A stretch of 64,000 nt of DNA from Epiperipatus broadwayi. Taxonomy: Eukaryota > Animalia > Onychophora. The position numbers were made by a program, and so were the translations under genes. Positions 22,931 to 55,249 of the stretch are shown here, piece by piece; position 1 is the first letter of the stretch, and every line of letters starts with the position of its first letter. The stretch is taken from assembly GCA_028023455.1 (NCBI GenBank), contig JAQFVV010000006.1, forward strand, positions 1,674,001 to 1,738,000. The letters are read 5' to 3'. The notes under the pieces are model-generated. The model was given only the letters and a program-made list of their open reading frames with translations. It searched no databases and had not been told where the DNA came from.

Positions 22931-24334
22931 TATATATTGTGACCTTCCAGGTTGGCACCAGGAAGAAATGTGGGAAGTTCACATTTGTGCTAACAATGGC
23001 TAAAGATAATTATCTGAGAAAAATGAATTGAGATGTAATTTGCTAGTTAAAATTAGGATTTAAAAAAAATTAAAACTTTAATTGGGTGTACTGATTGGTA
23101 GAGTTTTGGATTATATATGTTTGGTAGTAGAAGAGGAGGATGAACAATATTAGGGATGTTTGTATGTAGTAGAAAAATTTACATGTCATAATAAGCAGAT
23201 ACATAGATATATTATTAATTAGAATTTTCTTTCCTATATTTTATTTATTATTTACTGATTATGTATTGTTTAATCTTATATTTAAAATGATAAAGATTAT
23301 TTGTATTTTAGTGAATAAAATTTTTTAAGTAATTTTTTATTTTTTTTTTTTTTTTTTTTTTTTAATTTTTTTTTTTTATATTTTTTTATTAAAAATTGTA
23401 AAGATGGATAAAAAAAAAAAAGAGGGGGGGGGGGGGGGGGGAGGAGGGGGAAAGAAGAAAAAAAAAAAAAGAAAAAACTTAAAAGAATCAATAACTCTCT
23501 AAGAGTATTAGAACAAATATAAAAAAACATCGCAAGGATTCTAATAATATACCTGTGGAGAATTTTCTATTATACTACTGGGATAATATAAAATGAGGAG
23601 ATAAACACCCCTCCCAGAGGGAAACCAGCTCCAAATTTCTGTCAAGCGATGATCTATATTCACTACCTTTAAAATGCCTGGATGATGTGTAAGCTAAATA
23701 ATTATGATTTATTTTAAAGTATTACCAAAAGGAAATAATATCAAAATGACAAAATTGTTTAAAATAAAGCTAACTAAAATTTTCTTATTAAACACTATAA
23801 TTAAACGCTTGATTTTCAATTTTAATAATTTTTTATCAATATTCTACAAAATAAAATTTAAAATGAAAGTGTTTATCTATTTAATCTTATATCAAGAAGA
23901 TAATTTTATACTGTATAACTTTGCTATTCGCGCATATATAATAAAATAATTCCAATGCATGCAAATGTTATTATAATGCCTATCACGGAATTCTAGGATA
24001 AAAAAAAAGACTTGTCATTCTTAACAAATTATGCTTTAACAATCGGATAAACATTTTTTTTTAATGTTATAATTTACTGTTGTCTTTGAAACTAATATGT
24101 ATGTTTCTTTCAACTTTCAAATTTAAAAAAAAAAAAACTTAACATGTAATGATGGGATATTGATAAGTATTTTCGTTATTGATTACAACAGAGGTACAAA
24201 AAATTTTTTTTTTTGTTTTCTTTTAAAAAAAACAAAATGTAACTTCGTATCATTATAATATGATAATCTATTATTTTGTATGATTTAGAAATTATATTAT
24301 AGGTGATTATAGATATTCGGATGTGTGTGTGATG

Positions 24335-24560
24335 CTAGTGTCTGAACCTACCCTGACATCTCTCTGAGGAGTGCCAAAGCACGAAACCATGGTCAGGGGT
24401 TTGGGGAGGGGTTCCTGACAGAGATATTTTAAGTGCTAGCTCTGGCTAAGCATTTATCATAAAGCTTGTAGAGGAATTGGCAATCCTCACTGTTTATAAC
24501 TTACAAGCTTAAGAGATAGGGTCATGTGATCTATAAATTGATCTATGACTCTTATTTTGA
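24335..24560 (+). mobile_element. HHR element family B, 5'-truncated copy
   Basis: About 95% identical by eye to 45932-46146; contains an intact HHR. Confidence 0.85.
24344..24414 (+). ncRNA. Intact minimal type I hammerhead ribozyme (family B), predicted GUC cleavage after 24394
   Basis: CUGAGGA (24364-24370), stem II GUGC-CAAA-GCAC, GAAAC-CAUG-GUC with palindromic ACCAUGGU, stem I AUCUCU/AGGGGU plus distal GAACCUACCC/GGGAGGGGUUC around a UGAC/UU internal loop. Confidence 0.85.
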
Positions 24561-25659
24561 CTAGCTATAAATTATTATTTTAAAAAAAATTGTATTTATT
24601 ATGCTTTAATTTCGTTAATGAAGTTTATTTAAAAAAATAAAGAATTAAAACCTTGTCTGTTATAAGTTGGAGGTAGAAATGGTCAAGGGACGATTAGATT
24701 ATTTAGATTGAGTTTGGAGATATTATTTAACCCTCATGTATATAAGTATAAGTATAAGTGTTTGGTTATTGTTTTCCCTGCCTTTCTTTATTGTTGTATA
24801 GTTAATGTTAGATGATATATACTAATTATAACAGATAAGTGTTGTATTAATTTTTATAATATGTATAAAAGATGATTGATTTATGACATCATCCAAGTTC
24901 TATAAATAAGCTAATAAAAAATATGTTTAGAAATACATTATATTTACAATGTTATAAAAACACACATATTCGAAAATATATGATTCATGTATTAAATATT
25001 AGTCAATTTTGGGTTTACTGTAGAAGAAATGTAATTGGTTAGCAAGGTGCATAAAATAATATATATATTTTTTTATTTATTATTCATTTTGTCTTTTATT
25101 TTTAATAAATGTTTATTGAATTAATAGCCCATATGAATTGCTTGATTATATACATTCGATTCTCCATTTCCACACACACACACATCTGGTTAACATAGCA
25201 TAGCCCTAGAATATCTAAATTTGCCAGTATAAGTCGAGTTTTATTTAATTTGTCTGGAGATGATAAATCATCATATTAAAGTGCTAATAATATATTCTAC
25301 TTTGCTTAGAATAGATGGTGATGTGGATATAAAAGGTACCCGACCCTCATCATTATCTATCCCATACTAAATATGATAATTGATAATTTTGCAATAGTTT
25401 TGTAATTGAATAAACGGGTGGCATATGATTAAATTAGTGTTACAGAATTGTTATCCATAAATGTTTTATTACTTTTATTTGCATCTTATATGAAGACCAT
25501 ATCCTATAACCTCAACTGAGCTAAGCCATAGAATAATTACAATATAAGAATCTTTTAAATAAGTTTAAAAGCAATTTACAATTATAAATTTTATTCTATC
25601 TTGTATAGAATTGGTGCCTGGGCATTTATAAATCTAATAAAGTAAACAAGTGAAGAAGA

Positions 25660-25900
25660 CAGAGGTTACAATATATACAGCCCAACTCCATTTCAGGCTC
25701 TTAATTCTTTCAATGATGTTAGTAACACCAGTTTGTTCTCTCACCCATATATTTCAATTTTGATCTCTTGTTACTATTAGCATATATCTTTCCGTACTTA
25801 GCTGCATGGTCTGAAGTCTCTGGATTGCTCTTCTGTTAAGTGTCCAAGTGTCATAAAACAAGCAAATAACACTAAAGATAACGATAGAGAAATGATTTAA
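25660..25900 (-). pseudogene. RTE-clade LINE post-RT fragment
   Basis: Minus strand translates to ..DTWTLNRRAIQRLQTMQLSTERYML..WVREQTGVTNIIERIKSLKWSWA, same family as 48240-48300. Confidence 0.8.
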
Positions 25901-27237
25901 TGCTTAAGTACCGCCAGTATTGTCACAGTATGTCATGATGCTCTGAATTTCAAAATCTTCAAGATAAACCACATGCCAGAAAAACTTATCTGTTTAATAT
26001 CTGAGATTCCAAGATATTCTGCCATGGGAGCACTGTTGCAATTATATTTCAAGAATTTTGGTTTCTTTCAGGAATTGGCAAAACATAGCTATTAGGTTGC
26101 ACCAGAAATTTAACAGATGATCTTAATCCTGTTTATTCATCATGGTGGGTTAAACATTTCGTGATTTTAAAAGAGACTAAAATCTTCAACTATAAATACA
26201 AATAATTCCAAGGTTACAAAAAAAATAATTTTGAAATTTATCAGTTCCAGCTATTAAATACTTAATTATATTTTTATTGGTAAATCATTGTGATTATGAT
26301 GATGATCAAGAGGCTAGTAACCATCATGGAAGGTGAACATCCATTGATTTTCTTCATAGCCAGCCATTACCTTCCAGCTGCGTAACGACCACAAGAAAAG
26401 AACACTGCATTTAGTTTATACAGCGTAGAGCATATGATGGAAAAGTGATGTAAATTCGAACTCCTTTTTCATTCAATTGTACCTTGTATGCAAAATTTTT
26501 ATTAGGTAGCTCTGACAATGGGTTTTTTCCAGATCGATTCTGACTTCCTGGTCATCTTTTGCTTGGTAAAATCAGCCATATTTATAATACAATTTACGTA
26601 GAAAAATTATTTCTAATAAAATTATTATTATGACAAATATACAATTATTTATATTTATTCTTGTACTAAATGATAGATTATTACCTGATTTTGTTAAAAT
26701 CAACAAGATTAAAATTTCTAAATTGACTTTTCATATTCTATACACCAATATGGTTTTGTATTGAATATATTCTTAATTTCTATAAAACCTTTTATTACAC
26801 ACACAAATATATACATGCGCCTTTAAATGTTTTAGGAAAGTAAAGTTTGTTTACATGTATTTTTAAATCGAATATAATTCACCAAAATTATCGTAAATTA
26901 TACCTTTGGGCAATGTGGGATTACTGACCTAAATTCTTTAATGAATATTTTTATTCAAATTTAACTTTAGCCATGATTTTCAAAATTTAGCAACATGTTT
27001 TATTCTTGTCTTAAACTGTGATCGCCATTTTGGTAACCCTTGGCAACACTATATTCATACTTATAATAATATAAAGTGAAAATTTCTTTTCTCATGAAAA
27101 AAAAAGTTGGGTTCATTTTAACACTACTGAACCAATGTGGTTACTATTGCACTATATTATCACTTTATCCCATTTACTTTGAGGTTCATCATGGAATTTA
27201 ATAAGTTTATATTAATTCCTACATTTGGACTATTTTA

Positions 27238-28016
27238 TATGTGATGTGATGCACGGTGGCTTCTCCTTTATCGGAGTTGGGAATCTCAGCCACAATGCCC
27301 AGAGAAAGCTGTTAGCCACTTTACCTTTCCCTTCTATTCCCCACCCTAACTTTTTCCCATATTCTTCACTATCCTGCTCCATCCCACTTTCACAACATAA
27401 TCTTTGTCAACCGTATGGCCTTTATATCTAAATTCCCATTTATCATTCCCCAAACCTAGCATAAAAACCAAGAACCCACTTTCTGTATAACCTCTTTGTT
27501 TATATTTATTCTGCCCACAACTTCATTATTTGTATCTTTTCTGCTTGCAGGCATTTCCATTCAATTAACAGATGTCTAATATTTTGTATGCCTTTCTTAC
27601 ATAACTTGCAGACTAACTCACCCATATTTTTCCATTTATGGGTATACTCCCTTGGTTTTTTTTAAGTGTCATAGCATTGGCCGGGACGCGAACCCGCAAC
27701 CCGGGCAACTGCCTGCAAGTGCAAGGCAGTCATGCTGACCTCTCGACCACCAATGCAAGACTACTCCCTTGTAGTTAAATATCATTAAACTACTTTCGTT
27801 ATCATCATAAATTAACTCACACCCAATGTTCCGTTTACTTCTATATATAATTAAACACTTTTTACTCTCCGTTCTAGTTCTCCATCTCTCCAACTCCCTA
27901 TTTTTTATTAATGCATCTATTCTTCTATTGCATTTCTAGCTACTATAACATTCAACAATTCTTCTAACACAATAATCCCCCCTTTTGCATAAGTATACTG
28001 ACATAAATTCTTCATC
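27238..28016 (-). mobile_element. LINE family L 3' fragment, interrupted by a tRNA-derived retroposon
   Basis: Reverse complement is homologous to ~3765-4430 (EFMSVYLCKR..CVRRIVEC, CCHC region, 3' UTR, CATCAC tail). Confidence 0.85.
27655..27761 (-). mobile_element. tRNA-Gly-derived retroposon (SINE or retropseudogene) with A-tail and 10-bp TSD
   Basis: Minus strand GCATTGGTGGTCGAGAGGTCAGC..GGTTCGCGTCCCGGCCAATGC, then TATGACACTT and A8. TACTCCCTTG at 27645-27654 and 27762-27771. Confidence 0.85.
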
Positions 28017-28423
28017 TCTTAGTGTTATAGCATTGCCTAGTGAACTTATTGTAATATTAAGATAATAAATGGTGTAAAAGCAAAGACTATAAATAGTCAA
28101 TAAAAAATAGTCATATATCACATGACCACTTCTTTTTTAATGCTTGCAGGATATAAACAAAGAGCTTTGCTAATGGCTCAACAAGCTTTGAGATAAATGC
28201 TTAGCAAGAGAGAGCATTTAAAATATCTCCATCTTAATACCCCCCCCCCCATTCCCTGACCAATTAGCAAAGCTCTTTTGTTTAATAAACGGCATTACTC
28301 TGATTTATACATATAAAATATAGTTTATTAATATAATGTAATATATAATTGATTATTTTATATAGATTTATTTGTTTATGTTGTATATGCTTTTTTTTTT
28401 TAATGTTTATTTATTTATTTCAG

Positions 28424-28512
28424 GGCTTTGTATGAAAAGGGTTTAAGAGCATTTGTTTCATTTATTCAGTCTTATTCCAAGCACGAATGCTATCTTATCT
28501 TTAGGATTAAAG
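28424..28512 (+). CDS. DDX55: Internal coding exon of DDX55/Spb4 ([31 protein letters not shown])
   Basis: Long T tract and CAG acceptor (AG at 28422-28423), GTAAGT donor at 28513. The 89-nt exon is phase-compatible with 7128-7207. The peptide matches the recalled DDX55 motif [31 protein letters not shown]. Confidence 0.92.
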
Positions 28513-29288
28513 GTAAGTTGTTGGATTTCTTTTCATTTTTTATGTTATTGTAGTTTATTACCTTTGGAAATAAGAATTACTTATTAAAAGAGAAAAAGTT
28601 TTTTAGTATATTGCCATTTTTAAAAAGGTAAATTATAAGGATTCACTATTGTTGGAAAAGATTTTTTTTTTACCTATGTTTTTGAAATGGGAATTAAGCT
28701 TTTTAATATCAAACGAATTTATATGATTTTGCTCGTGAAAGGAATTTACAATGCTTTTTGATCTCTTTAATATTTAATAACGGTGAGGCATAAATAGCTA
28801 ACGAACGAATGGTTTGTATTTCCAGTGAAATAATTCCATGGTTAATTTGAATATATTTATTACCAGCTCTACTTAATTATTGAGTTTCTAATATTAGCCA
28901 CTAGAATGCCCTGAAGTGTCTCGGACACTGAGTGAAATATATATATAACATTCAGACTCTCTGATTATTAAACATTTTCGGTGTATTGTTTTATATATGT
29001 CAATTAAATCTTAGAGTGAATAGAGTAATTTATTAGAGAGAGCTGTGTGTATATATATAAACCTTAGAAGCCAGTCAACACTTAAGACAAACACAGTATA
29101 GATAATAATCAACAATCTCAAACTGTTGTCAAGGCAACTGCTTTTATTTTTCTATATATATAATATAATTTTATGAGTCGATGTCTGTATTTCTTCAAAG
29201 CAATATACATAATTATATAATTGAATATTTATACATACAGTAATCAGATATATATATATATAAAGTATAACTTTAAAAATTTTATCCA

Positions 29289-29460
29289 CTTAGAAGCGCT
29301 TTCAACTATCCTCATAGTCTTTGTCAACTAACACTTTGAAAGATTAACCTTCCCACAATTCTGTGATCTTAACGTTTGCTGCCTGCCTGTTAATTAAGTC
29401 ATGTTTGTATTTGTATATTAGCATAGCTTCCTTTATTTTCCTTTTGTTGTTATTTTTTTC
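29289..29460 (-). mobile_element. Penelope-like element 3' remnant: GIY-YIG C-terminus plus variant HHR
   Basis: EKNNNKRKIKEAMLIYKYKHDLINRQAANVKITELWEG* is homologous to the 35180-35360 fragment. Just downstream is UUAG-UUGACAA-A-GACUAU-GAGG-AUAGUU-GAAAG-CG-CUU-CUAA (29331-29290). Confidence 0.75.
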
Positions 29461-29761
29461 AATTATATAATTACATATATATATATAAATAAAGATGAAG
29501 TCAAAAAATAGGAATAGTATGTAATAGTGAAGGAACACTTCTTTCACTGGCTGTAATTATGTGCTTACTATCAAATCAGTCTCTACAGTGCAGATGAAAA
29601 ACTAATCTCTTTTCAACTGCAGTCTATAATAATAATAGATCACACAAAGGTTAATACTAAAGCGAACATCAATCTTTTAAGATAGAAATATTTTGTAATG
29701 TTTTTGATAAATTTCAAACTTACCACCCTTACAACATTAACACAAACCACTTGATGGAAGT

Positions 29762-31470
29762 ATATTAATAATTTTTATCAATCATCCATTAGACTAAAAA
29801 TTATTTACTTAATGAATAATATATCTGTAGTGTAATTTTCATATCACCACTCTCATACATGATAGGGACTGGTGTAGTGAAAATTATACAGCAGAAATAT
29901 GATTCATTATGTGGATAATCTCTAGTCCAGTGATCTTCAACCTTTGGTCCGTGGACTGGCACCGGGCCACAGAAGTTTTCTGCTGGTCCGCATTAACTGG
30001 CAGGAAAGTGTGTAATAACAAAATAATAAGATTTTAAACTTTTAATTAATATAAATAATTTTTATTTTTTCATCGCAACTGCTTAAATAAAATTAATTAT
30101 AAATCAAAATTTTATTTAAATTATTAAATAATACTATAATTACTAAATAATAATTGAAGAAATTTATTTGAAAATGCAATCTTTAAAAAACAAAGTGTCA
30201 ATCTCATGATAATTGCACCACTCCTTACACGTCAATTTCTATATCTAGTAGGCATTGCTGTATAGCGTTAGCTCATTTATTGGTTATATATAGCAAATTT
30301 TTTATTGCATTTGTATCATCTTTTTATTTTGTGTGTGACATTTCTTTTTGAAATGGTAAACTTCACAAAATGGAGACAAAATAAATCAAACAACAAAATC
30401 TTTTGGCCTTCTTAAGAAGAGACAAGGATAATATTCCAGTAAAAAGTGATGCTGATACTGAAAGTATGGCAAGTACTAGTGTTTCAACTCTTGAAGAAAC
30501 GAGGAAAAAGAGATATGTCAATACTTCAGAATGTGCAGTAAAAGGAGGTCATTTTTTTTCTACGATAAAAATTAATAAAAAAGGCCATTTTATTAGAAAT
30601 TACAGTAAGGAGTATTTAAAACTTGGTTTCATAGTTGCTCCTGACTGAACTATTACCACAACCTTTGTGTGTAGTATGTTCCGAATTTTTGTCAAATGAA
30701 GCTATGTGACACTTTACCAAAACCAACTTTTCAGCTCAATTTTCCCAGTGGCTTTACAGGTGGTCCTCAGGTGACTTCAAGAATAAACAACTAATGCAAT
30801 CTGGTGTTATTTTAATCTCATTTTTACCCAGTTTAAAAAAAAAAGAAACGGAACGAAAACAAAATCTAATCCATCATACATAAATTAATTTGTTTTTCTA
30901 GTTATCACAGATGTTTAGGGGGGGGGGTTAGAATTAAATTTTTTATTAATTTTCTAAAAAAATTCAAAATTAAAAAAAAAAAGTTTTTTATTATACAAAC
31001 TCCATATATATATAACTTCATCTTGTATATTTAACATTAAATACAGATATTACATTTATCATAATCATTGTCATGTAATTACACTAGCTGTGATATTTCC
31101 CAACATTCAGGTGAATAACATTTTATTCTTGCATATTTTAACAATAAAATGATAAACATAGAAATGCAAGCACCTTAATGAGAATGATTCTTATTGTACT
31201 GTTTTTTGTAGCAGTATGACTGCGCAACTCGAGAAAGAGTGTTCAGCATGTGAAGGTAAGCAACACCATTACAATACACTGTAACTAGTGTGTTGTTTTA
31301 GTCTGTTATAACAATTATGCTCATCTAAGGCTAAGCAGTTTAAATCTTTAAGGAAATTTATCTGTAGACTTCTGCCAGTCCGCGAAATCTTATTCTTATT
31401 TTTGCCGGTCTGCAGGTGTGAAAAGGTTGAATACCATTTCTCTAGTCTAATGAATCGCTAAGAAAAATTA
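29762..31470 (+). mobile_element. Fold-back fragment of HHR subfamily A2, split by the hAT insertion
   Basis: 29762-29927 and 31440-31470 rejoin to GTGGATAATCTCTAGTCTAATGAAT, matching the uninterrupted copy near 51490-51520. Confidence 0.7.
29928..31439 (+). mobile_element. Internally deleted hAT transposon (Charlie/Buster-type) with 8-bp TSD
   Basis: TIR CAGTGATCTTCAACC versus GGTTGAATACCATTT (11/15). CTCTAGTC at 29920-29927 and 31440-31447. Broken transposase N-terminus at 30370-30710 (RNYSKEYLKLGF..LPQPLCVVCSEFLSNEAM). Confidence 0.9.
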
Positions 31471-31703
31471 TTCTGTAAATGTTCAACATTCGGTTTTAAT
31501 ATTTAAACCTTTTTAATTTTGTATTAGAATTCAATAAATTGAGCTTGATTTGTTAGATGTACAAGCTTACAAATGAAAAATACGCTAAAAAAAATCATGT
31601 TTGAATTTTACACAATATATCTTTTTCAAAAGTTATATCAGGTGAGATGTATATAAGATAATGTCAAATATTATTATCTTTTGTAATAAAACAAAATATA
31701 CAA

Positions 31704-31786
31704 GTCAAGCTTTGGTTGTGTAGTGGTTAGCATAGCTGCCTTCCGAGCTGCTGCATTCCAGTCAACGCATTTGACATATGAAAAAA
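31704..31786 (+). mobile_element. tRNA-Gly(TCC)-derived retroposon with T-arm deletion
   Basis: GTCAA leader, GCTTTGGTTGTGTAGTGGTTAGCATAGCTGCCTTCCGAGC..GTCAACGCA, then TTTGACATATG and an A-run. Confidence 0.75.
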
Positions 31787-31967
31787 TATATATACAATTT
31801 AAAACACTTGATAATACCCCAAAATTTAAGGGTGAGTTTTTAAAAAATTTGATTGATAAGATTACAACATTTTACACAGTAAATATTTTAGTTCTATAAA
31901 TATTTTAGGAACATTCTACAAAACATAATTAAATAAAAATCTATTTCTCTTCCTTTAATTCTATAGA

Positions 31968-32440
31968 ACAATGCTTAATAAATGTCTGTCCTGTGTTATT
32001 TCTTTTTCTCTACTTCTGCCACCTTGGGTACATTGACGTAATTAATAGATACTATATGACAATGCTTAATAAATCTATCCTATGCTATTTTTCTTTCTCT
32101 ACTTCTGCCACTTCGTGTAAGTTTGAGTAATTAATAAATACCATATCACAATGCTTAATAAATCTCTATCCGATGCTATTCTTCTTCCTCTAGTTCTGCA
32201 CTTTGTGTAAGTTTGAGTAATTAATAAATATCATATGACAATGCTTAATAAATCTCTGTCCTTCGCTATTTCTTTGCCTCTAGTTCTGCCACCTTGTGTA
32301 AATTTGAATAACTAATAGATACCATATGACAATGCATAATAAGTCTCTATCCTATACTATCTTATTCATATCCCCAAACTAGTTATAACTTATAAGCTTT
32401 CATCAGTGATCAGTTTTGAATCTAGATAGGTAGTTCTTTT
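31968..32440 (-). repeat. ~90-bp minisatellite (about 4.4 units) attached to a decayed family-C-like HHR
   Basis: ACAATGCTTAATA recurs at 31968, 32059, 32148, 32238 and 32329. Minus strand 32430-32365 (CAAAACTGATCACTGATGAAAGC..AACTAGTTTGGGGATAT) aligns with the family C HHR region. Confidence 0.8.
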
Positions 32441-35044
32441 CAAATTGTTGAAGGGAATGATCTGATGTCATGGTTTTTTTTAAACAAAAAATGTTTTAGA
32501 GAATGAATGAATAATTGAAAATTGTAATCCTGTTTGTGCATTTTTTAGATGAATGAAATGGCTGTTTAATGTATCAAATATTTGGAAATGAAATTATTAT
32601 TTTTCTTTAACTTTTTCACATTTGACTTTTTTATCACCCACATCTAGTGAAATTTCAGTTAATAATGCAACATTTTAATCTTAATTTTATTATGAATCAA
32701 TAAATTGGGCTTAATTTATTACAATTTATGTTTAACCCAAAAAAAAAATTCTAAAAAAATCATATTTGAACTTTGCAAATATTAGAAAAGTGTTAAGAAT
32801 GTGAAATTCGTAACAAAGACAGTGACTTTATTTCATTTACCGGCTATTTATCATAGCACTATTGCAAAAAGAGAATTAATAAAATGTGTTTGTTGAATCA
32901 ATTCCAGTTTTTAAATCTGAATGAATTACTGTAAAGTTGTAACAAATCTTTTGAAATATTTATCTGAAATTGTTTGTTGTATTTATATTTATTAAATTAT
33001 TACAACAATTTAGAATCACTGCTGGTTGCCAGAATGCCAACACCAGTTGTTTCGCTGCTTCCTGTATAATTTTCTTCAAGTTTCTTAACTTGTATTTTTA
33101 AAAGTCAAATATATCTTTAAAAAAATCTAAATAAAAATATATTTTATTTTTAATAATTTTAATGGAAATATTTTGTAAAATTAATTACAAATAATTATAT
33201 ACATTATGAAATTATTCATTTTTTTTTCTTTCTTTTAAAGTATTGATTAGGTAGTCCTTTTAATATTTGTAATCAAAAAAATCAACCAATTAGAATCCTC
33301 TTGCTTTGTTAGACTCATTCATCTTATATTCTAAAGGTTGCTCTTAGCATGTAATATTGACTTTATTAATTACAAAGAGAATCTGAAGATGTCAGTAGTC
33401 CATAGAAAAGTTTAATTCAACTTTTTAATGCAAAATGATCAAAAATAATTGTAAAAAAGCGTGATCACAACACTGCATGAGAAACTGCAATAACTAATCA
33501 AAAGGCTAAGAAAGATAATATAAGAGCTGATTGGTGATGTAAAAATATTCCTGGTTAGGAGCCGAACAATTTATAATTATAACATTTAAATCTGATTTAT
33601 GAGTGAAAAAAGATAAGTAAATAAAGTTAAAGTAAATTTTAAATTGCAAGGAAAATTAAAAGGAAATGAATGAAAGATATCTTTACAATCCAGTTTATTA
33701 TTGGTTATTACTAACATTACAGAGATTGTGTGACAGACTGGAACTTAAAGTCCATGGTTTGTGTCTAACTATTGCTTTTAGTGTTCCACTTCTTATGAAT
33801 TCCTGAACAATTAAAGTCATTCAATATATTATTGTTTGCTTCAGTGGTATATATTATTCTGGATTTATATTTAATTGGCTGTATAAAACTTACAATTTAA
33901 TTACAAAATAGAAAACTGTTTTAAATAAGTTCTGATTATCATCGTCATTAACAGCCAATCAAAGACAACTATTGGTAATCTAATTTTAGAAAACAAAGGA
34001 TACAAAGAAAAAATGAAAAGGTTGAAAACAAAGACAGAAATGACAAGATTGGAATCAGAATTGATGTGTGTATAGTGCATAAAGAACAGAGATATGGTTA
34101 CATTCACTGCAAAGAGATAAAACTCATGATAACCAGATTCTGTAAATTTCTAACTGACAATAATAAGTTTAAAGAAAGGTGAGTGAAAAAGCAGGATTAT
34201 TAATTTAGTTATACATATTAGTGGTTATTAATTGGTGAATTAAGAATCGGAGTGAGAAAATTAAAATATGATTAGAAATAAAATAAACTTCATGAATTTT
34301 TTATTAAATGAAAACATTTGCATATTCCCCCCCCCCCCCAATTTATCTCTTCCTTCTCTATTGCGCACTTTCTCTTACTTCTGGAAATGAATATGTTGTT
34401 GTCGGAGTAATAATTCATTTTCTTTAATTTTGCTCCAAAGCCATCTATAGTAAGTTTGAGTAATCACTGGAAGTTAGATTAAAGCCTGCATTGATTATCA
34501 TAAGGATAAGAAAAACTGATGCTTTGTGTTTTATATTAAATAAATATTGATCATTGTTGTCACATTTTTAATTAATATCTTCGGGTTTAGGTAGGTAGAT
34601 ACCGTGCTTTAAAATTAAGAAGGATAGAGAATATTATTCTTTCTTCAATGCGTTTAAACCCCATCATTCGTATTTCATTATAATATATATATAATATTGA
34701 TTTATCACTTCTGCATCTTAAAATGTTATTGCTTTTAAACAAGTATTGATAATTTTTTAAAAAATATATGTATACATTAAAATAATTTTAGCTGCACGTC
34801 ACTCTCAAAAGCTTTCAAAAATCCTATCAGCAAAATTTAGAGAAACTAGGGTCCCACATGCTTAATATATAAAATCAATACTTTGCTGTCTTGGGTTTCA
34901 TTTTTTTTTCCATTGATTTACAATGAAAAAAAAAGTTGTTTTCCCCCATAAAAGAAGAATATTGTATTACATATAAGAAGTAAATAGTTGGGTGTTTATA
35001 TATATATTTAAAATATTATATATATAATAAATAAAATATCCGTT

Positions 35045-35590
35045 AATTAAAAACAATATTGTAATTATAATTGAAATAATATTTTTAACGGTTTATAAAC
35101 AATTACAAACAATCTTAAAATCCGCATTAGTACTTTCGGTTACTTTCTAACCTGCCTCAACTGCCATTAAATTCTTTGATCACGAAAAAACATGTAAATA
35201 TAAATTTAAATTTACTTTTGAAAATGTGAAAATTCTTCATGAAGAGAGAAACCATAGTAAAAGAAAAATTAAAGAGGCAATTTTTATAAACAGGAATAAA
35301 ACGCATTTAATAAATCGACAAGCTTATAACATTAAAATACGAGATTCTTGGAATTTGAATTGATGACGTTTGCTTCCGCTTTTGGTTTTTGAATTTAATG
35401 GCAGTTGAGGCAGGTTAGAAAGTAACCGAAAGTACTTCTGCGGATTTTAAGATTTTTAATGTTTGCTTCCGCTTTTGGTTTTTGAATTTAATGGCAGTTG
35501 AGGCAGGTTAGAAAGTAACCAAAAGTACTTCTGCGGATTTTAAGATTGTTTGTAATTGTTTATAAACCGTTAAAAATATTATTTCAATTA
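35045..35590 (+). mobile_element. Penelope-like element remnant: inverted 5' pLTR, GIY-YIG C-terminus and tandem 3' pLTR (93-bp period)
   Basis: FENVKILHEERNHSKRKIKEAIFINRNKTHLINRQAYNIK at ~35215-35340. ~35050-35175 is inverted relative to ~35485-35590. HHR-like motif at 35401 and 35494. Confidence 0.85.
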
Positions 35591-35689
35591 TATATATATA
35601 ATGTTTTAAATACATATATATTTTCTAATGTAATTATAAGGGATTTGAAATATTACATATTCAGCCTGTATTCGGCCCATACCTCTTTT

Positions 35690-35985
35690 GTATAATTAAA
35701 TGGACATATTAAGGTCCTATGTGTGAGGGGTTAGAGACTGGCTTAAGGTCAACATGGGTTTGACGATAATACTGGCATCAGCAGTGCTTTGAGCGTTCCG
35801 TCCTCAGATTTATAAATTATATGGATGGCTGAAGAGTTGGAGAGTGGAGAAGATTGAAGCTTGCCCATTTAAGTTTGAAGATTTTCTATCTTAATATAGA
35901 CTGAGTGCTGATTGTACATATGTATGAGAGATGGGGATCTGGACCAACTGATGAGTGCTGATTCTGCATGAAGTATTTGGTCATG
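35690..35985 (+). mobile_element. HHR element family A fragment
   Basis: Homologous to 12705-12920; GATCTGGACCAACTGATGAGTGCTG at ~35936-35960, truncated after stem II. Confidence 0.7.
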
Positions 35986-37419
35986 GGTATCAATTGCGTA
36001 AGATGGACTGGATATATGTATATATTGGTAGAGAGCCTTAAATTGCTCTGTGCAGGATAAATAAATGTTTCCACAGACTCTTAAAGAGGAATAATGAATG
36101 ATACCAGGCTTTCCAATTGCTGACTAGCGAGGGTTTGGGCAGCTAGATCCCTATTTATCGATTCAATATTTATTGGCTAAGAGATAACTATTTGCAATCC
36201 AAACCTGTTTGGAAACTTGAAAAAATGTCAGTATGGGTTGTCACAGAGCAGAGATTTGGATGATTAGAAAAAGGAAAAAAGCAATGTGAAAACTTGTAGG
36301 TATTTGGTTGTGGATTTAGTAAGTGAAAAGAGGTTTATTATTGAGAAACTTATGAAGTAAAGAAGAATATTGGGTTAAGACATATTTAGAGCTAGAGGAA
36401 TTATGAGATTGTTGAAAGATTCCCTGAAATCCAAAAGAAAAAGAGATGGGAGGGTTTTTCAGTAATAATGTGCAAAACTGCACATTTTGGTTTTTAAATA
36501 ATATAACATTTCAAAAATTTACTATCACTTTATGCATACAATGATCCCTTTCCCCATATGTATCTTTAAATTGGAACATTGACAAAGTAGATTTGGAAGG
36601 CAATGATAAATTAGTGTGCAGAACCTGGCTTTCAAATTGCAAAGATAAAACGGCTTTATGTATAGGAAAGAGTTTGAAAAAATACTATGAATCTATATAT
36701 ATATATATATAGTGGTCCTTCTTATATCCATGATACTCGATTCCAAGCTATGACATGATAAGAAAATTTGCTGATAGTAATGAATCATTTCGTACTATGC
36801 ATTTTAAATGTGTGTATATACTGGAGCCATGTGTTGAAAACATGAAGGTCACACACATGCACAAATATTTGGGACATAGCACAATGGCTGTGAGTAAAAG
36901 AAATTAAGAGATTTGGGATATAGAATAATTGCTATCTAATATATATATATATTATTTTGTTGTTTTCAAATATAATGTCTATTATTCTGCCTTACATTGC
37001 ACTTTAAAAACAAAGCTGTGTACTATTAAATAATCTTAATGAATTGATAAATTATAAATAAATCAAAATAATAGACAACTCGTCAATATACAACTTAATT
37101 TAATATCATCTAATCTCAAGACGCCATTTTTAAAATTTATCATGTGACAGGAGTGTTCTAGCATTGTACACTCTAGTGGTCACTAGTAGAAACACTCATG
37201 AAAAAAAAATTTTTTTTAAAATTTATATATATGTGCTCTTATTCATTTCTTTAATAACTTATAATTATTATTTGTAAGCACACAAACATTTAATTCATGT
37301 CTTATACTATCAATATATATATATATATATTTATCTTATATAGATGTACAGTTGCCATGTAACTGACAATGACCATTTTCCTTCCAATTTTATTGAACCG
37401 TTGACCATATTAATACATT

Positions 37420-38010
37420 CATTTATGTTTTCTTGTTTATATAATGTTTCATAATATTTCTTTTTTTAAAATTGTTAGCATACGTTATTACTTTTATATT
37501 TTTCTCATAATTTATTATATGTCTTGTTTTTAAATAATGTTTACATGGTCCAGACTTAGTATTTTTCCTTTTTAATTTGTCACATGTAATTATATAAACA
37601 TTTTCTATTCTATTATTAATATTGTCATTCATTTTTGCATTGTATAACTATTTTTTTCCATCTTCCGTTCTATATTTACTTCATCCTTTAACTTACATGT
37701 ATATACTTCTACTGAATATGGAATTGAAATCCATTTTTTAACTGGATCTATTTTCTTCCCTTTTATATAATTTCCATTTCTAGTATTTGAAAATTTTCTA
37801 ATTACTTTTCCATTATAACCAATTTCAATATATTTTTTCTCTGTTTCTAATTTCTACACATACACACCTCTTTTTTATTTAATGAGAGTCTATCATTTTT
37901 GACTTTAAATTTTTTCAAAGCTGCCATTTTTTGAGACATAGTTGGTATGATTTAGAATCAATAACCCATCTAATATTTTTATCTTCAATAAAATGTTATA
38001 TATATATTTC
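37420..38010 (-). pseudogene. Penelope-like pol remnant (RT thumb, linker and GIY-YIG)
   Basis: Frameshifted minus-strand peptides MSQKMAALK, KKWISIPY and ENVYIITC..KSGPCKHYLKTRHIINYEKNIKVITYANNFKKRNIM. Confidence 0.7.
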
Positions 38011-38168
38011 CCTTTATATCTTGATTTAAGTTCAAGTCTAAATATTTTAATCCTTTCTTATCTTTTTTTATAATAATCCTAATATTATACTTATTATTAT
38101 TTAACTCTTTAAATGCATACGCCTACTGTTTCTATTTATAATTATATCATTTACACATCTAATAATGT

Positions 38169-38680
38169 TATAAATAAGGGGTTTGAACTCACTTGCACAC
38201 GACCCTCAACTACCCATGCTATCTCGTACTGCTGATGTACTTGATCACACCCGTCAAAAAGATAAATAATCACCAATATATGTATTTCGTGCTAAACCAG
38301 CACTCATCATTTGGTCCAGATTATCATTTCCACAGTCAATGCTCAGCTTTATATTAAGATGGCCAATCTTCATACTTTAATGGAAAGGCTTCAAACTACT
38401 CCAACCCACAACTCTTCAGCCTTCCATTTCATTGAAAATCTGATAACAGAATGCTCAAAGCCCACATTAGTGCCAACCTTCTCATTCTACCCATGTTGAC
38501 CATAAGTCACCCTGACCCCTCATATACAGGACTTAATCAATTTATATACATATACAAGGGATGGGCAGACCTTAATGCACTATTTTATAATAAATAAATT
38601 TTTTCTAAAGTACAGGCTGTTTCATACCAGCACTCCTATATGTAATAAATAGAGGGTTTGAACTCAGACTTAGAAAAAAT
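38169..38680 (-). mobile_element. HHR element family A, full monomer (~478 bp) with short terminal redundancy and 13/14-bp TSD
   Basis: GGGTTTGAACTCA recurs at ~38178 and ~38654. ACATCTAATAATGT (38155-38168) versus ACATCTATAATGT (38681-38693). HHR at 38268-38322 with a C3A change. Confidence 0.8.
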
Positions 38681-39803
38681 ACATCTATAATGTAAATTTT
38701 TTTTTATTTTTAATATATTTATCAATTACATTTTCCTCAATAAAACCACTTGCTGCACTAATTAATAATAGCTTGGAATTGATAGTTACCTATTAACATC
38801 ATTGCTAGAAATACTGAAATCCTCCATGTATTATTTATTTACATCTTAATTAATTTATAAAAGTATTTAATATTTGACATATGTACGTATATTTGTGTAT
38901 GTCTGCGAAGCAGTAATTGTGGGGTTAGTTGCATGGGCGTGATGTCATTCAAGTACCTTATTGGCATCTTTAGGCACAACTCTTTCAATCAGTTGAAGAA
39001 ATTGATATTTTTTTCTCCCTCCCTGGGAATCAATTCAGAAGCCTTTAAGTTTTGAATTCACCAGTTGACCACAGTATAAAACACCGCAGGGCTGACTTTA
39101 AAAAGATCTGCTACATTACATGCTTTATATCTGAAAAATCTCTTAGTATCTAGCGATAAGAAAACTACTAATCATTAATGATAGCATACAAAGACTCTGC
39201 TCCCGAGATATAAATGTATCGATATGAAAGCTTTTCATCGATTACTTTTACAGCACGTCAGAGCACAAACTGTTCTAATGATTTGAGCTGTTTACAAAAG
39301 ATAGTATTTTAAATACGAATCATCGTTGTAAGGCATTCTCATCTGAATAATCAATTTTTTTTTTTTACATTTATTGACAAACCGAACTTTCTGTTAGCAC
39401 ATACCAATAGATTTATAGTTTTGTAAATTCCCTACATCTCTTTACAGAAAAGCATTAAAAAAACATTAACTAAAAACTTATTGATTAGCAATGATTCTGA
39501 AAATGTTGGAAATTTCTACAGATTATTGATAGTTATAAACATTTATAACCTTTTTTTAAAAATTATTCCATGGAAAAAAAAGTATGTTCTAATAAATAGA
39601 AAATAAATAAAACTCATTTCTATTTACCTTTTATTTGTTTCTTTACATGTTGTTAATATGCATCTCAGCCTATACACCCTTAATCGTGACGTCATATTGG
39701 ATGTTTGAGCCATATGGATAAGTTTGTTTATCTTGGAGAGTTTTGTTGGTCATTCTTTATAAAGCTAAGTGAAAGTAATTTAAGTTTAAATATTTATTCA
39801 TAT

Positions 39804-39920
39804 TGTCAAGCGTTGTTAGCCGAGAGGTCAGCGCAGCCGCCTTGCAAGCAAGCAGTTGGTTGCAGACGGTTGTTGCGGGTTCGCCTCCCGACTGATGGTG
39901 TGACATATGGAAAAAAAAAA
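39804..39920 (+). mobile_element. tRNA-Gly-body retroposon with TGC at the anticodon position, A-tail and 10-bp TSD
   Basis: GTCAA leader, GCGTTGTTAGCCGAGAGGTCAGC..CTTGCAAG..GGTTCGCCTCCCG, TGACATATG, A10. TTATTCATAT at 39794-39803 and 39921-39930. Confidence 0.85.
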
Positions 39921-40417
39921 TTATTCATATATGTACTGAAGTTGAAGTTATATGTATCTAAAAAGATATTTCATATAAAAAAGAGGGATGGTGTTGAATT
40001 ATGCCATGTGGTTCGCATATCATTAAAAACATATTAATCTTTAACATTCTTTAAAGTTTATGTCTTGACTAAGATTGGTATGTTAATCTCTAGTTTAATA
40101 AGTGATTAGTAATAATTAGTAATGAATTTATCTGAAAAGGATTGTCTTAAAGATATGAATGTGGGAAATTTGACTGTAAATCAAACTGTAATAATTTAAT
40201 CTTGATAAATGCTGAACGAATGATGACATGCATAAGAAATTAAGATCTAGGTCCACTGAAATTCAGCATGAAATGCATTTTGTGGGGTCAGATGTCTAAT
40301 CATATCTTTTAAGAATGTGTAGTGGAATCAAAGTTCTAAGTATTTCCAAAAAAGATATCGCCCATGGGAAAGAAGACACAAAAAAAATTACTCTAGTGTT
40401 TATGATTAATTAAATAA

Positions 40418-40610
40418 CAGACGAAGGCCACAAGCCAGCAACTAGTCTGGGGATATTGGATGAGTAGGCACTGGATAGGGATTTTATGCACAAGCCTTCT
40501 GGCATCCATTGATTACTCAGGCTTGCACTGAGTGGCACTACTGTATGGAGAGTTTTGCTTGTTTTAATAACCGTTATGAGCGAGCATAAGAAATGGTGAT
40601 CATGTGATGT
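40418..40610 (+). mobile_element. HHR element family C, short copy without inversion, 12-bp TSD
   Basis: TTAATTAAATAA at 40406-40417 and 40611-40622. Begins inside the HHR core and ends at CATGTGATGT. Confidence 0.85.
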
Positions 40611-41299
40611 TTAATTAAATAATGGATATGTTAATCTTTAACTTAGATTTAAAATATATATCTGAGCTGCGAATAAGACAATCATCTGCAACCTAGTAAA
40701 TCATCTGTAACCTAGTAAATGATTAGTAAAAATCGTTAATATATATTGTTAAAATAGATGGCATCTCAGTGATGAGTGCAGAATATATAAATCATAATTT
40801 AAGATTATGTTTGAAATTAGGCATTGCTTATTGGGGAAAACTTCATTCTGTAAAAACTCTACTATAGATATTTATATACGCCACATATGCAAGTTTTAGG
40901 AAAAGATTTAAATACTGTGCATTATGTTGCATTCTTGTGATACAGTAAATATATTACTTTTATATCCACATGATTTAGATACCCAAAATTCAGGGTTATT
41001 AATGTACCCTGTATATTATATTTTAAATGTGAATGTCTATATACTGTAGAGACGCGTTTAACATATATTTGGACATTTGGACTCTGTATACATTTGCCTT
41101 TGTTGTAAATATTAGATTTTATCGACCTTTGATGCTGGTGTAATAAAGATCTTTCACAGAAGTTGTAGAGATGCCTAAAAAGATCAGATCACCTTTTTCG
41201 TGGGTGAAAGATATACGAACATATATTCCAGATTCATCTACGTCAATATTTGCTTTTAAGGGTTAGGATTATACTGATGCTTCAACTGGACCTCACCAA

Positions 41300-42440
41300 T
41301 TGTCTTCTAACTAATAAGGTCTTTTTGGTATATTGCTGAATATCTGATTTTTGGTTTTCAAGAGTCTGCAACATCTTTGAATGATATCTGCTACCCAAGA
41401 AAGAAACGATTTATATATTGCTTTTATAGGTTCGGTCAAGGCATTTGGTTCATTTAATAGAACATTGAATTGGTTGTCCAAAATTTATTCACATTATATG
41501 GTCTTCTACATCATAGAATAAGAGGATGTAGAAAATCTGATGTATTTGAAATAAAAATTGGTGTTAAACAAGATTGTGTACTTGTTCCAACATTGTTTTC
41601 AGTTTTTACGACTAATTTTTGGAATTATTTATAGGCAACTTAATCAAACAGGATCAAAGTAGGATACATGTTTGGTGGTGGAATTTTTAAGTTGAATCGA
41701 TTAAAAATGAAAATAAGAACTTCTTCGATTTTGGTTTTACAGCATGATAATGATTGTACTATTTTTGCCAGTTCAAAAGACAATTTACAGAATATTCTTA
41801 ATGTTTTGAATGCAGTATAAAGACTTGGGTTTATTAATTAATGTTCAAAAACTTCAAGTTTATCAACCAGTGACTGAAGCAAAATCCCCAGCAACTTTTA
41901 GATTGGATGGTTATCGATTTGAGGATGTAAATCAGTTTAAATACCTTGGTGGATGTAGATATTAAGATATAACCCAGACTCCAATATGCTCTTGCTTTAA
42001 AATCTGTATATAGAGCTGCTATTTTATCTAATTTATTGTATGGAAGTGAAGCTTGGACACTAATGGCACAATACGAAAACATTAGAAAAAATGGTATTAA
42101 AGGATAACTCATAAAATTTTTAAAATAGAAATGGCAAAATCATAAAGATTAATCAATTTTCTGTTTGCTGGATGCCATACTATTGGGTTCACTACTGTAA
42201 AATCATGTCTTCCTTGGATTGGACAACTAAAATGAATGAATAATGGAAGACTTCCTAAGAGGGTGTTTTATGGTGAATTTTATGGGGAAAGTTAGACCCT
42301 ATCTCCATTGTCAGGCTTATCTTAAAAACATTCTAAAGAAATGCAATGTTAATTGTTTCTATTATGAAGATATTACAGAGAATAGAATACATTGGAGAAC
42401 TATAATTGGATATAGTATTGAAGTATTTTAGAAAGAAACA
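41300..42440 (+). pseudogene. RTE-clade LINE reverse transcriptase, heavily decayed
   Basis: LYIAFI, IGVKQDCVLVPTLFSVF, GGIFKLNRLK, NLLYGSEAWT, KYLG and LKNILKKC..ENRIHWR, with many stops and frameshifts. Confidence 0.85.
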
Positions 42441-45119
42441 TTTTCTGCTGAAGAAATTGAGAAAGGTATTATAAAATATCAAGTAAACAAAAAAAAAAAA
42501 AATGGAGAGCATGTTCTATATATGGATGTATTTGTAGTTTTTGGTTATGTAGTCATTGCTATACTAGTTTATGGTTTCTTTTGTTCTCTATTCTCTAATG
42601 CCCTTTGCTTCCTCAACTTATGAGAGATAGCACTGATATAGATTAAATACAATAGGATGCTGGTCCTGACGTAGGAGTTGAAAATAAGCTGTGATGTGTA
42701 ATTTTGGACTTTGTATTCATTGTTTGTAATGTTTTAAGAAGGTTTTTTCTTTTCAATATATTCTATTGTCATCCTAAGTGACTATCTATTTGTTGGTCAG
42801 TAAATGGGTATGTGCATATTCTGAGCTATTAATGAAATTATTAAACCATCGCTATCTGATGATGGTAGATCTTTTTACTCTCTCTCTCTGTGTGTGTAGA
42901 GGTACTGCAATAGGTGATTTAATAATAGTTTCACGATTTACCTGTATAATTTATATATATAATCTTTAAGTTAATTTTTTAACTTTATTGCAGTCAGAAT
43001 GCCTTTATTTGATTAAGTAGTGATCACTGTGACCTTAAATCCAATTAGTTACCTAGTGAGATTTAGTGACCGTTGTGACATTCTAATCTGCATTTGTAAG
43101 AGATTTATTCTCTTTAACTTTAGCTTTAAAATTTAATTTATTTTTTAATCTATTGTAGGTACTTTAATAAAATCAAAGGTTTAGTTAGCAGATATTCTTT
43201 TTTAAAGTGATTTTTTACAATAAATAATAAATACTCATGGAAGAAAACAATTGGAAAGATAAATACTTAAATTAGGTTAATAAATTGAAAATGTTTGAAA
43301 TATTATAAATAAATAAAAAAAATGAGGCAGCAATCAGAGCTGTTTCTAATAATAGATCATATAATTTTTCAGCCCCCACAGTATTTGATAAAACAGAAGC
43401 AGTCCTCTATTCTAATGCCATCTATTGTAAAGCTGAGTTATGAGGATTACCAGATGCCTTATTGCATTTTAAATTAATAAAGACAAAAGCTATAAACTGG
43501 TTTGGATATGGGGAATTAAAATGCTTAGAATACCTGATAATCATTGATTATTCACATGTATGATAGATAATATTAGATTATAGAACTGCCATTTTTTATT
43601 TTAAGGATAGGAACTGTGGGTGAGATGCGGCCCGCAATGATATTGAATCCAGTCCTCTGCATGAATAGACAAAAGCCATACCCTAACAAATTATTAGAAG
43701 ACTAGACAATAAAAATATTTACAGATTTTAGTTTTATCTGTAATCGATTCTTATTTAGGTCATTAGTCAAACAGTAATTTTTAAACCTTGCGATCTCATA
43801 AAACAATGCCTGCATGGAATCTTCTGACAAATGTAATCCGTCAAATTTCATAAATAATGACGAGGAACTTTTTTTATTACAAAATGGCAATTTGTAACTA
43901 TATTTTAGTAGAAATAAGCAAACTCATTTATGTTTTTGAAGCAAATCAAGTTATTTGCAAAAGTGACAAAACTAAACTTATTTTTTACAAAATGGCGACT
44001 TGTAACTTTATTTATTGAAAATAAATGAACACATTTTTGCGAGAAATAATGTTGCAACAACTAAATTTTTAGCAATGTATATTTATGCCAATATGAAAGA
44101 AAATAAAAAAAAAGATTGTTTCTTACAATTACTTGGGTGGACTAAAGTTTTTATGTCTTTCAAAATGCAAATGAAAGCGTAGCTATGATTTACATGAAAT
44201 GTTCTTATTCGGAAGCTTGCAAGTTTTCACTTTTATAGAATTATGTGTTTTTTCTTGGAATGGCACACTACATGCACAGACTTCTGCTAGATCATTATTC
44301 CAGTCTATCACTATCTTCTGAAAGTGATGGACTTATCGTCCTCAGTAATGGGCAGTCCCCAAATTTTAACCAATCATATCTTTGGATAAAAATGTTGCTA
44401 AAAAAAAATCACTCCAGGAATCAAAGCTGGACAGTGAATCATTTATAATATACAGCTTATTTTCACCAGATGATCGATTAATCATCCCAGCATTCTTTAA
44501 ATCCTAAAATTTGCAGAGAAACCAACATTTTGAGTAACTACTTTCTCCTGATCAGAACATTATGTAATATTCAGTTAAAAAGTTATTTATTTTTTTCTTT
44601 ATAAGATTATAAAATGTGCTTAATTTGATGTTTATTCACACATTTGTTTGTGCCTTTGATCACAGCAGGTCTAACCAGTAAGTAATTTTACAATTTTTTA
44701 AAATATAACACTTTGGTAATTCAAATTATTTAACTTTTATTAGATTCTGAATTGTTTATTGAATCATTTAATTTATTTTGTCCCACATAATGATAAGAAA
44801 ATTTCATTCTGCCACTGACAAAAAAGATGCCTTCCCTTGTTTTATAATATGTTTCATTTTGTACAATGTATATTGCTATGTTTAATTCTAGTCCAAATTC
44901 CTCTCTCTCTTATTTGAAAGACAACTGGTAACAATTTTGCTCATATTTGATCTCTTCCGATTCAATTATAAACTTGTCTATTCATAAATACAATTTCTAC
45001 ATCCTACTTCAACCACTTTTAGCAATATTTTTCTATGCAATTTATGTTTTGACTGTTTTGCAGTCTTTCCCCAAACCACTCTTATTTCAATTTCTTAAAA
45101 AAAATTCCCAAAAACAACA

Positions 45120-45240
45120 ACAAAGAAACATACAATCTGTTGTTTCGACTGTGTTTTTTTGGAAATTTTTTAAGAAATTGAAATAAGAATGACTCTGAGG
45201 AAGGCTGTATGACAGTCAAAAACAACAGATTGTGTGTCTA
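45120..45240 (+). mobile_element. Decayed HHR with short inverted arm
   Basis: CUGAGGA-A-GGCUG-UAUGA-CAGUC-AAAAAC at 45195-45223. The inverted copy near 45130-45150 keeps CAGUCGAAAC. No UH triplet. Confidence 0.4.
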
Positions 45241-45689
45241 TGTTTATACAATAAGGTGTAGAAATTATATTTATATTAAATATTACAGCAAAATAAAGGA
45301 AGTGGTGGGTTTTAATGATATTTGTGAATTGTGTATTCATAATAATTGCTGAATGATATTTCTTATTTGAATTTCATTTTTAAAATGGAAATAAATTTTA
45401 GTTGAGACATAGTAAAAGAATGAAAATGTGTCTTAAGGTTTAAAATTAAATTTATTATTATTGAAATTCCACAAAAATGTCTTCACTGCTTTATTGCAAT
45501 TATATTATTACAACTTGTTTTCTTAAAACCAAATATTTTGAAATAAAATCTGATTGTAATCACATAGCTTTTTTGGTTTACAATTAATATATTTTATAAG
45601 CTACAATTTTTCTTTTGGAAATTTTCAAACAATGAAATATTCTAAAATTAGTTCGGTGCCAGAAAATCTATCAATCAGTATTATTGTTT

Positions 45690-46153
45690 AAAAAAAAAAC
45701 ATGATCTGTGACTCTTATTTTGACTATTTATAGTCTCTTCCATAAGTCTTATGCAATTTTATATTGCCAAGACTACTAATATATGGTATGGCTGAAGATC
45801 TATCAGACCCATATAGCTATTTGAGTTGGATAGCTGGGTTTGAAGACATGTAGGTGTCTGAAAATTTCAGATTTCCCACTCAGTAGATAACTTTTAGTTA
45901 AATGCTTGGCTTTGGGTTGATATTTTTAGATCTAGTGTCTGAACCTACCCTGACACCTCTCTGAGGAGTGCCAAAGCACGAAACCATGGTCAGGGGTTTG
46001 GGGAGGAGTTCCTGACAGAGATATTTTAAGTGCTGGCTCTGGCTAAGCATTTATCATAAAGCTTGTAGAGGAATTGGCAATCCTCTTTGTTTTTATAACT
46101 TACAAGCTTAAGAGATAGGGTCACATGATCTATGACTCTTATTTTGAGTATTT
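45690..46153 (+). mobile_element. HHR element family B, full monomer (424 bp) with ~30-bp redundancy and 13-bp TSD (1 mismatch)
   Basis: CATGATCT(G/A)TGACTCTTATTTTGA at 45700 and 46124. AGTATTATTGTTT (45677-45689) versus AGTATTACTGTTT (46154-46166). Confidence 0.85.
45941..46011 (+). ncRNA. Intact minimal type I hammerhead ribozyme (family B), predicted GUC cleavage after 45991
   Basis: ACCUCU-CUGAGGA-GUGC-CAAA-GCAC-GAAAC-CAUG-GUC-AGGGGU; core and stems II/III identical to the 24364 copy. Confidence 0.85.
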
Positions 46154-55165: not shown

Positions 55166-55249
55166 TCTCCCATTCATATATATATATATTGAGAAAATCA
55201 AGTCATACAGCATGTGACTTAACTTATTAAGCTTGTACTACAAAATGTA

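Follow-up and report, generated by a model that had tools for sequence, protein, structure and literature searches.

We analyzed a 64-kb stretch of contig JAQFVV010000006.1 of the onychophoran Epiperipatus broadwayi (positions 1,674,001 to 1,738,000; hereafter the window), in which two type I hammerhead ribozyme (HHR) motifs lie on either side of an exon of a DDX55/Spb4-type helicase gene. HHR1 occupies positions 24344 to 24414 and HHR2 positions 45941 to 46011, both on the + strand. Only two exact matches to their 31-nt core, CTGAGGAGTGCCAAAGCACGAAACCATGGTC, are present in the window, at 24364 to 24394 and at 45961 to 45991 on the + strand, with an expectation of zero from shuffled sequence. 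The catalytic core is complete in both motifs, comprising C3-U4-G5-A6-G7-G8-A9, G12-A13-A14, the A15.1-U16.1 pair, and C17 at the cleavage site, in agreement with the type I core of Rfam family RF00163 (CUGANGA ... GAAA ... UC, with H17 as the cleavage residue). Stem II of both HHRs consists of 4 bp (GUGC/GCAC) closed by G10.1-C11.1 and capped by a CAAA loop, and helix III is the 8-nt palindrome ACCAUGGU (ACC-AU-GGU). Stem I has a 6-bp proximal part, an internal loop, and a distal G/C-rich helix, giving the three-helix type I layout with helix I open.

Over 77 nt, HHR1 and HHR2 differ at only two positions, both in stem I (24359 T/C and 24410 G/A), with the result that HHR1 has a U-G wobble at 24359 where HHR2 has the C-G pair of the family reference unit described below. 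In targeted scans against Rfam Hammerhead_1 (RF00163), HHR1 scored 32.3 bits and HHR2 34.3 bits, relative to a gathering score of 34. Targeted scans of 400 nt were needed to score both, since whole-window scans lost one or both motifs to speed filters: a whole-window scan at the gathering score reported neither, and a whole-window E-value scan listed HHR1 only. Cleavage is predicted after C17, at 24394/24395 for HHR1 and at 45991/45992 for HHR2, and would leave 2',3'-cyclic phosphate and 5'-OH ends.

A DDX55/Spb4-type gene with giant introns

The exon between the two HHRs (28424 to 28512, +) contributes one base followed by 29 residues and is bordered by a cag acceptor and a gtaagt donor (cag/G ... 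AAAG/gtaagt). Its translation matched Pfam CTE_SPB4 (PF13959) at 36.9 bits (cut-off, 27), and its best match among solved structures was to residues 422 to 447 of yeast Spb4, with a Chaetomium helicase also among the best. A search of 1.84 billion representative proteins returned 139 homologs, which run on into a DDX55-type tail (LD..LA..FGLL.LPKMPEL). Using three of these homologs (P0028, P0051, and P0053) in tblastn, we found the preceding exon at 7128 to 7207 (+), which encodes APLEELKIEDDIENILPQIQMMATKD together with two extra bases. Its acceptor is ag and its donor gt, and it is in phase with the exon at 28424. The next exon downstream was located by a whole-genome protein search at C6:1922504-1922668, approximately 220 kb past the exon at 28424 to 28512, and matches the stretch of the homologs holding the LPKMPEL-type segment of the family. 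This exon was not found by tblastn and a small profile within the window or 30 kb of sampled downstream sequence. A weak match at 30360 to 30428 (E = 0.72) was considered as an exon and rejected, as it has neither splice sites nor the motif.

No DEAD-box core motifs were found in the 64-kb window; the helicase-core exons lie upstream of it on the same strand of C6, and CTE_SPB4 therefore follows a DEAD-box helicase core in this gene. When the full-length homolog P0082 was compared with solved structures, only the yeast Spb4 and Chaetomium helicase chains also covered its C-terminal tail. These Spb4-type matches and the tail, rather than a tree, are suggestive of orthology with Spb4/DDX55 and not with DDX10, DDX18, or DDX31. 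The gene structure was derived from exons searched one at a time rather than from a joined, spliced protein model. The Spb4/DDX55 gene is required for 60S ribosome biogenesis. Elsewhere in the genome, we observed an intronless frame of 778 aa (L031; C6245:1142252-1145389, -) encoding a DEAD-box helicase with CTE_SPB4 (62 bits) that is 35% identical to P0082; this is a paralog of the DDX55-type gene and possibly a retrogene.

The gene spans at least 497 kb (C6:1425351-1922668) and contains a further giant intron of approximately 203 kb between exons at 1455500 and 1658667. The 21.2-kb intron that holds HHR1 reaches its acceptor 4,029 nt beyond the motif. The approximately 220-kb intron holds HHR2 at a depth of 17.5 kb, leaving about 202 kb to the next exon. 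Relative to the gene, both HHRs are in the sense orientation. An earlier inspection of the letters of the window (the sequence-only reading) had described two intact, near-identical sense HHRs, each with a 4-bp stem II, a stem I with an internal loop, and a palindromic helix III, bracketing a DDX55 exon with predicted cuts 21,597 nt apart. The exact cores, the stems, the splice sites, the CTE_SPB4 match, and the same-strand neighboring exons bear out this description and its spacing. Our analysis adds the approximately 220-kb intron, a 435-nt repeat unit, and the identity of the element as a retrozyme, which we describe below.

The 435-nt retrozyme family and its two window copies

In the 5.6-Gb assembly, we counted 5,678 exact matches to the 31-nt core (2,830 forward and 2,848 reverse; 1.01 per Mb), and the reversed core, used as a control, does not occur at all. 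The 226 nt around HHR1 gave at least 1,698 first-look genome candidates, and the 40 that were scored were 98 to 100% identical. From 30 loci fetched from the same genome, we read the anatomy of the family. In many of these loci (L004, L008, L023, and L030), hammerheads repeat every 435 nt in up to 8 tandem units, so that the family consists of head-to-tail units each with one type I hammerhead, whereas the window copies are solo and amount to 0.5 and 1.04 units. The unit has a GC content of 39% (the window has 29%) and no open reading frame (ORF), the longest stop-free stretch in a trimer being 50 aa, and it has no terminal repeats beyond its own redundancy, with no search aimed at a primer-binding site or polypurine tract. 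It is thus non-coding, low in GC, and free of long terminal repeats (LTRs), as are metazoan non-LTR retrozymes. The RNA running from one cleavage site to the next is predicted to fold at -147.9 kcal/mol (z = -5.94), with stem I extending into a long rod, and none of 100 shuffles was as stable.

Insertions of the family start at variable 5' positions and fall into two types by their fixed 3' ends. One type ends at approximately unit position 225 to 235 (...TTTTGACTATTTATA) and the other at approximately 160 to 169 (...CACTGTTTATA). Many insertions consist of head-to-head twin arms, in which one end type is always paired with the other. Such arms were seen at L003, L005, L007, L010, L011, L015, L016, L020, L022, L025, L026, and L028, with ends at approximately 225 to 248 and 160 to 169, both of which sit at a TTTATA-like motif. 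This arrangement suggests a template with two preferred priming sites, each used by one of the DNA ends at a single target site. Together, variable 5' truncation, a fixed 3' end, inverted arms, and target duplication make up an insertion footprint of the Penelope-like type.

Copy 1 (24338 to 24563, +), which carries HHR1, is a 5'-truncated solo insertion of 226 nt that aligns by blastn to approximately positions 4 to 229 of the 435-nt unit. It is flanked by a 4-bp target duplication, GCTA (24334 to 24337 and 24564 to 24567), and interrupts an older repeat, many paralogs of which join the two flanks directly (query 607/834, with a 4-nt overlap) and thereby represent the empty site. The flanks themselves (23733 to 24337 and 24564 to 25163) belong to another abundant repeat, with more than 3,800 first-look candidates at 86 to 96% identity; its recurrence at distances of approximately 6.5 to 7.5 kb in some contigs suggests a larger element or tandem structure. 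Copy 2 (45699 to 46154, +), which carries HHR2, is 456 nt long and runs from approximately unit position 190 to 435 and then from 1 to 233, with approximately 33 nt repeated at both ends. It has an A9 run at its 5' junction and a 12-bp target duplication, GTATTAYTGTTT (45678 to 45689 and 46155 to 46166), and matches to the family covered positions 598 to 1053 of the query used to search with it. Each copy has one of the two usual 3' ends of the family and differs by approximately 2 to 6% from the reference unit. We sought an empty alternate haplotype for each site, and no second contig in the assembly covers either one.

Over their common 164 nt (direct repeat D5), the two copies are 96% identical, as would be expected if one local segmental duplication, rather than two insertions, had made the pair. 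However, the flanks of copy 1 and copy 2 do not align with each other, the 5' ends differ (unit position ~4 versus ~190), the target duplications differ (GCTA versus GTATTAYTGTTT), and copy 1 sits inside a repeat that is absent from the flanks of copy 2. Because of these differing junctions and unrelated flanks, we consider an origin by segmental duplication excluded. The target duplications, truncations, and unrelated flanks instead indicate that the copies inserted separately and are not a designed pair.

The family resembles two known kinds of elements. Animal type I hammerheads sit in tandem repeats of 150 to 450 bp and yield circular RNAs (PMC7229834), and the metazoan non-LTR retrozymes of that report (Cervera and de la Pena 2020, PMC7229834) share with our family a type I hammerhead in each unit of an AT-rich, non-coding tandem repeat, a repeat length in the hundreds of bp, genomic copy numbers in the thousands, target duplications, and a unit RNA that is highly self-paired, as predicted here. 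The comparison with expressed circular retrozymes is made on sequence, and two differences stand out: with 435 nt, the unit falls near the top of the size range (RNAs of ~170 to 400 nt and repeats of 150 to 450 bp), and the window copies are solo, one of them half a unit, and alone cannot give a unit-length circle. Penelope-like elements, which carry hammerheads in their terminal repeats, share with this family a short palindromic helix III in the hammerhead, 5' truncation to differing extents, target duplications that vary in length, partial tandems, and inverted arms arranged head to head (PMC8557442; bioRxiv 10.64898/2026.07.22.740005); unlike them, the 435-nt unit has no attached reverse transcriptase or GIY-YIG ORF. 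An origin of retrozymes from Penelope-like elements has been proposed (bioRxiv 10.64898/2026.07.22.740005).

These findings support a model in which the copies carrying HHR1 and HHR2 are very probably two independent, fairly recent retrotransposition insertions of a non-coding animal non-LTR retrozyme, which came to lie in the sense orientation in neighboring introns of the DDX55/Spb4-type gene by chance and, we infer, have no host role. In such a model, the hammerhead would cut multimeric retrozyme transcripts to unit-length RNAs, with a neighboring ribozyme 435 nt away in an array able to provide the partner for the palindromic helix III. The units would fold into a stable rod, would be circularized by analogy with published retrozymes, and, again by analogy, may be reverse-transcribed by a Penelope-like enzyme that is primed at the target site. 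Solo intronic copies would at most cause occasional, tolerated cuts in intron RNA. Consistent with this, the mismatch rate among genomic copies of the family is 1.9% in the core and 2.4% in the whole unit, and this comparison detected no selection on the hammerhead among single genomic copies. Since core and unit mismatch rates are close, the copies behave as expected for neutrally decaying insertions. The sequence-only reading had likewise favored tolerated young insertions, and the target duplications, distinct 5' truncations, usual 3' ends, low divergence, and empty-site paralogs of copy 1 uphold that view.

Several observations weigh against this model. No autonomous Penelope-like element sharing the unit sequence was found in the 30 loci, which contained no Penelope-like ORF; a search for ORFs beside family copies in these loci returned only ordinary reverse-transcriptase fragments. 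Xenopus retrozymes are depleted from introns (bioRxiv 10.64898/2026.07.22.740005), a hint that copies in introns can be costly. Finally, two exact cores within 21.6 kb exceed what the genome-wide density predicts, as 0.065 exact cores are expected per 64-kb window and the probability of two or more is approximately 0.002; the insertions may be clustered. If cores were scattered independently, approximately 175 of 87,521 windows would be expected to hold at least two, and the prior for both copies being in the sense orientation is one in four. The pairing of HHRs in this window is thus mildly unusual, and the motif itself is far beyond chance.

Folding and possible cleavage of the host transcript

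The sequence-only reading had taken it as established that minimal HHRs with a short palindromic helix III cleave efficiently mainly as dimers. One part of this premise agrees with published work, since dimerization raises the activity of newt and axolotl hammerheads whose helix III is weak (PMC7229834). Like these satellite hammerheads, the palindromic helix III of the window HHRs allows an 8-bp intermolecular helix, and the predicted co-fold minimum of two copies was a double hammerhead containing it (-59.0 versus 2 x -25.7 kcal/mol). Co-folding of HHR1 with HHR2 likewise gave a double hammerhead joined by 8 bp of intermolecular helix III (-58.1 kcal/mol). For a single motif, the energy model places the catalytic fold 4.7 kcal/mol above the most stable structure, in which part of the core is paired. 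The premise is made uncertain by the alternative form of helix III, in which 2 bp are capped by a CAUG tetraloop; the classic amphibian motif, in contrast, has 1 bp and a tetraloop. A helix III of 2 bp and a tetraloop has been described as "similar to invertebrate HHRs," and invertebrate hammerheads are efficient as single motifs, with coral and mussel retrozymes cutting as such at approximately 0.8 and 0.1 per min (PMC7229834). Because helix III can be read in this way, dependence of HHR1 and HHR2 on dimerization is not established.

From the dimer premise, the sequence-only reading went on to suggest that a dimer partner is already present within the pre-mRNA, which could be cut in its introns or release a piece that includes the exon. 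In that case, HHR1 and HHR2 of one transcript would pair through their palindromic helices III, and cleavage in both introns would free the exon on a fragment of 21.6 kb. The heterodimer co-fold and the higher activity of the amphibian dimers are compatible with such pairing. In natural arrays, however, the partner is 435 nt away and not 21,597 nt, and transcription reaches HHR2 21.6 kb beyond HHR1 and 17.5 kb past the acceptor of the intron containing HHR1. RNA polymerase II typically travels at 2 to 3 kb per min. At this speed, HHR2 would emerge minutes later than HHR1, by which time the spliceosome would likely have engaged or even excised the HHR1 intron. Furthermore, the two copies are chance neighbors from a family with 5,678 cores, the complementarity is common to every genome copy so that a partner could equally come from other transcripts, and nothing is conserved in or specific to the HHR1-HHR2 pair. 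We obtained no positive evidence for a self-supplied dimer partner or for release of an exon-containing fragment and regard intramolecular pairing as extremely improbable.

Cutting by each HHR alone is a more serious rival. In this scenario, each sense HHR, acting singly or paired with HHRs of other transcripts, would cut nascent DDX55 pre-mRNA and thereby lower or tune its output. HHR2 would matter most because approximately 202 kb of intron is still untranscribed after it, and a slow ribozyme would have time to act there, in contrast to the 4,029 nt that separate HHR1 from its acceptor. Both cores are intact, HHR2 reaches the Rfam gathering score, and helix III in the 2-bp form corresponds to that of the single coral and mussel motifs with the rates given above. 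Fast intronic ribozymes are also known to lower expression, as for the Cpeb3 ribozyme (PMC10919898), and the T3H48 hammerhead placed in a zebrafish intron caused up to a 20-fold reduction (PMC11856399). The window HHRs resemble the hepatitis delta virus (HDV)-like Cpeb3 ribozyme and engineered T3H48 in being sense intronic ribozymes whose cleavage would compete with cotranscriptional splicing. Those ribozymes, however, are conserved or engineered, are fast, and have demonstrated effects, whereas the window HHRs appear from their sequences to be young, unconserved repeat copies. The 4.7-kcal/mol cost of the catalytic monomer fold, relative to a minimum in which part of the core is paired, further counts against cutting alone, as do the lack of extra core conservation among genomic copies and of anything conserved at either site. 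A gene needed for ribosome biogenesis carries the insertions nonetheless, and the assembly offers no second haplotype at the locus. Slow ribozymes were without effect on splicing in the work of Fong et al. 2009, as cited in PMC10919898. On balance, we consider it unlikely that HHR1 or HHR2 alone regulates DDX55 output, and chance insertion of two retrozyme copies with no host role is the reading that we favor.

Neighboring repeats and the wider question

Other parts of the window also hold repeats, some of them related to the retrozyme family. At 28080 to 28229 (-), an old antisense fragment, from this or a related family, corresponds to unit positions 243 to 87 at 77.5% identity, lacks a hammerhead, and forms inverted repeats I9 and I21. 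The region at 28080 to 28247 (-), approximately 200 nt upstream of the exon acceptor, is 76 to 84% complementary over 79 to 106 nt to parts of the two sense copies (24403 to 24508 and 46018 to 46096, +). The 89-nt exon at 28424 to 28512 is therefore flanked by an inverted-repeat pair of a kind able to favor back-splicing, which is probably irrelevant because the exon is so short. An old sense fragment of the family (55508 to 55640, +) covers unit positions 313 to 447 at 83% identity, has no intact hammerhead, and forms direct repeat D16, and another old fragment without a hammerhead lies at 55351 to 55398 (-).

We also observed a second repeat family with a hammerhead-like CTGATGAGTGCTGG...CATGAAAT motif, present at 12886 to 12955, 35915 to 35979, 51664 to 51733, 52004 to 52073, and 53094 to 53163 on the + strand and at 38256 to 38325, 52942 to 53011, and 55098 to 55167 on the - strand. 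Most of its cores are damaged (GAAG, or G12 lost), and only 52996 to 52963 (-) fits a hammerhead descriptor. Two copies of a degraded element (3063 to 3986 and 46342 to 47752, both +) are 75 to 85% identical and gave a weak RVT_1 match (17.6 bits) that is below the cut-off. A perfect inverted repeat of 72 + 72 nt with no spacer and 100% complementarity occupies 15959 to 16102; its matches to microRNA models were weak and all below threshold.

The locus thus presents two well-delimited solo insertions of an element of known kind, with clean junctions and, for copy 1, an empty-site control. The point worth keeping is that a ribosome-biogenesis gene has an intact sense hammerhead at 17.5 kb within an intron of roughly 220 kb. 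A bolder proposal is that sense retrozyme hammerheads truly cut nascent pre-mRNA in the giant introns of this genome, in which case DDX55 and other long-intron genes would either rely on an upstream exon tethered to the polymerase or be throttled by their retrozyme load. We hold this to be improbable. Were it true, the genome would be a natural test of whether splicing survives intron cleavage. Provided that these motifs are active, its giant introns and thousands of retrozymes would make this genome well suited to asking whether intron cleavage harms expression, and it could show whether selection removes sense-oriented copies. The idea to carry forward therefore concerns sense hammerheads in giant introns across the genome and not the DDX55 locus alone.

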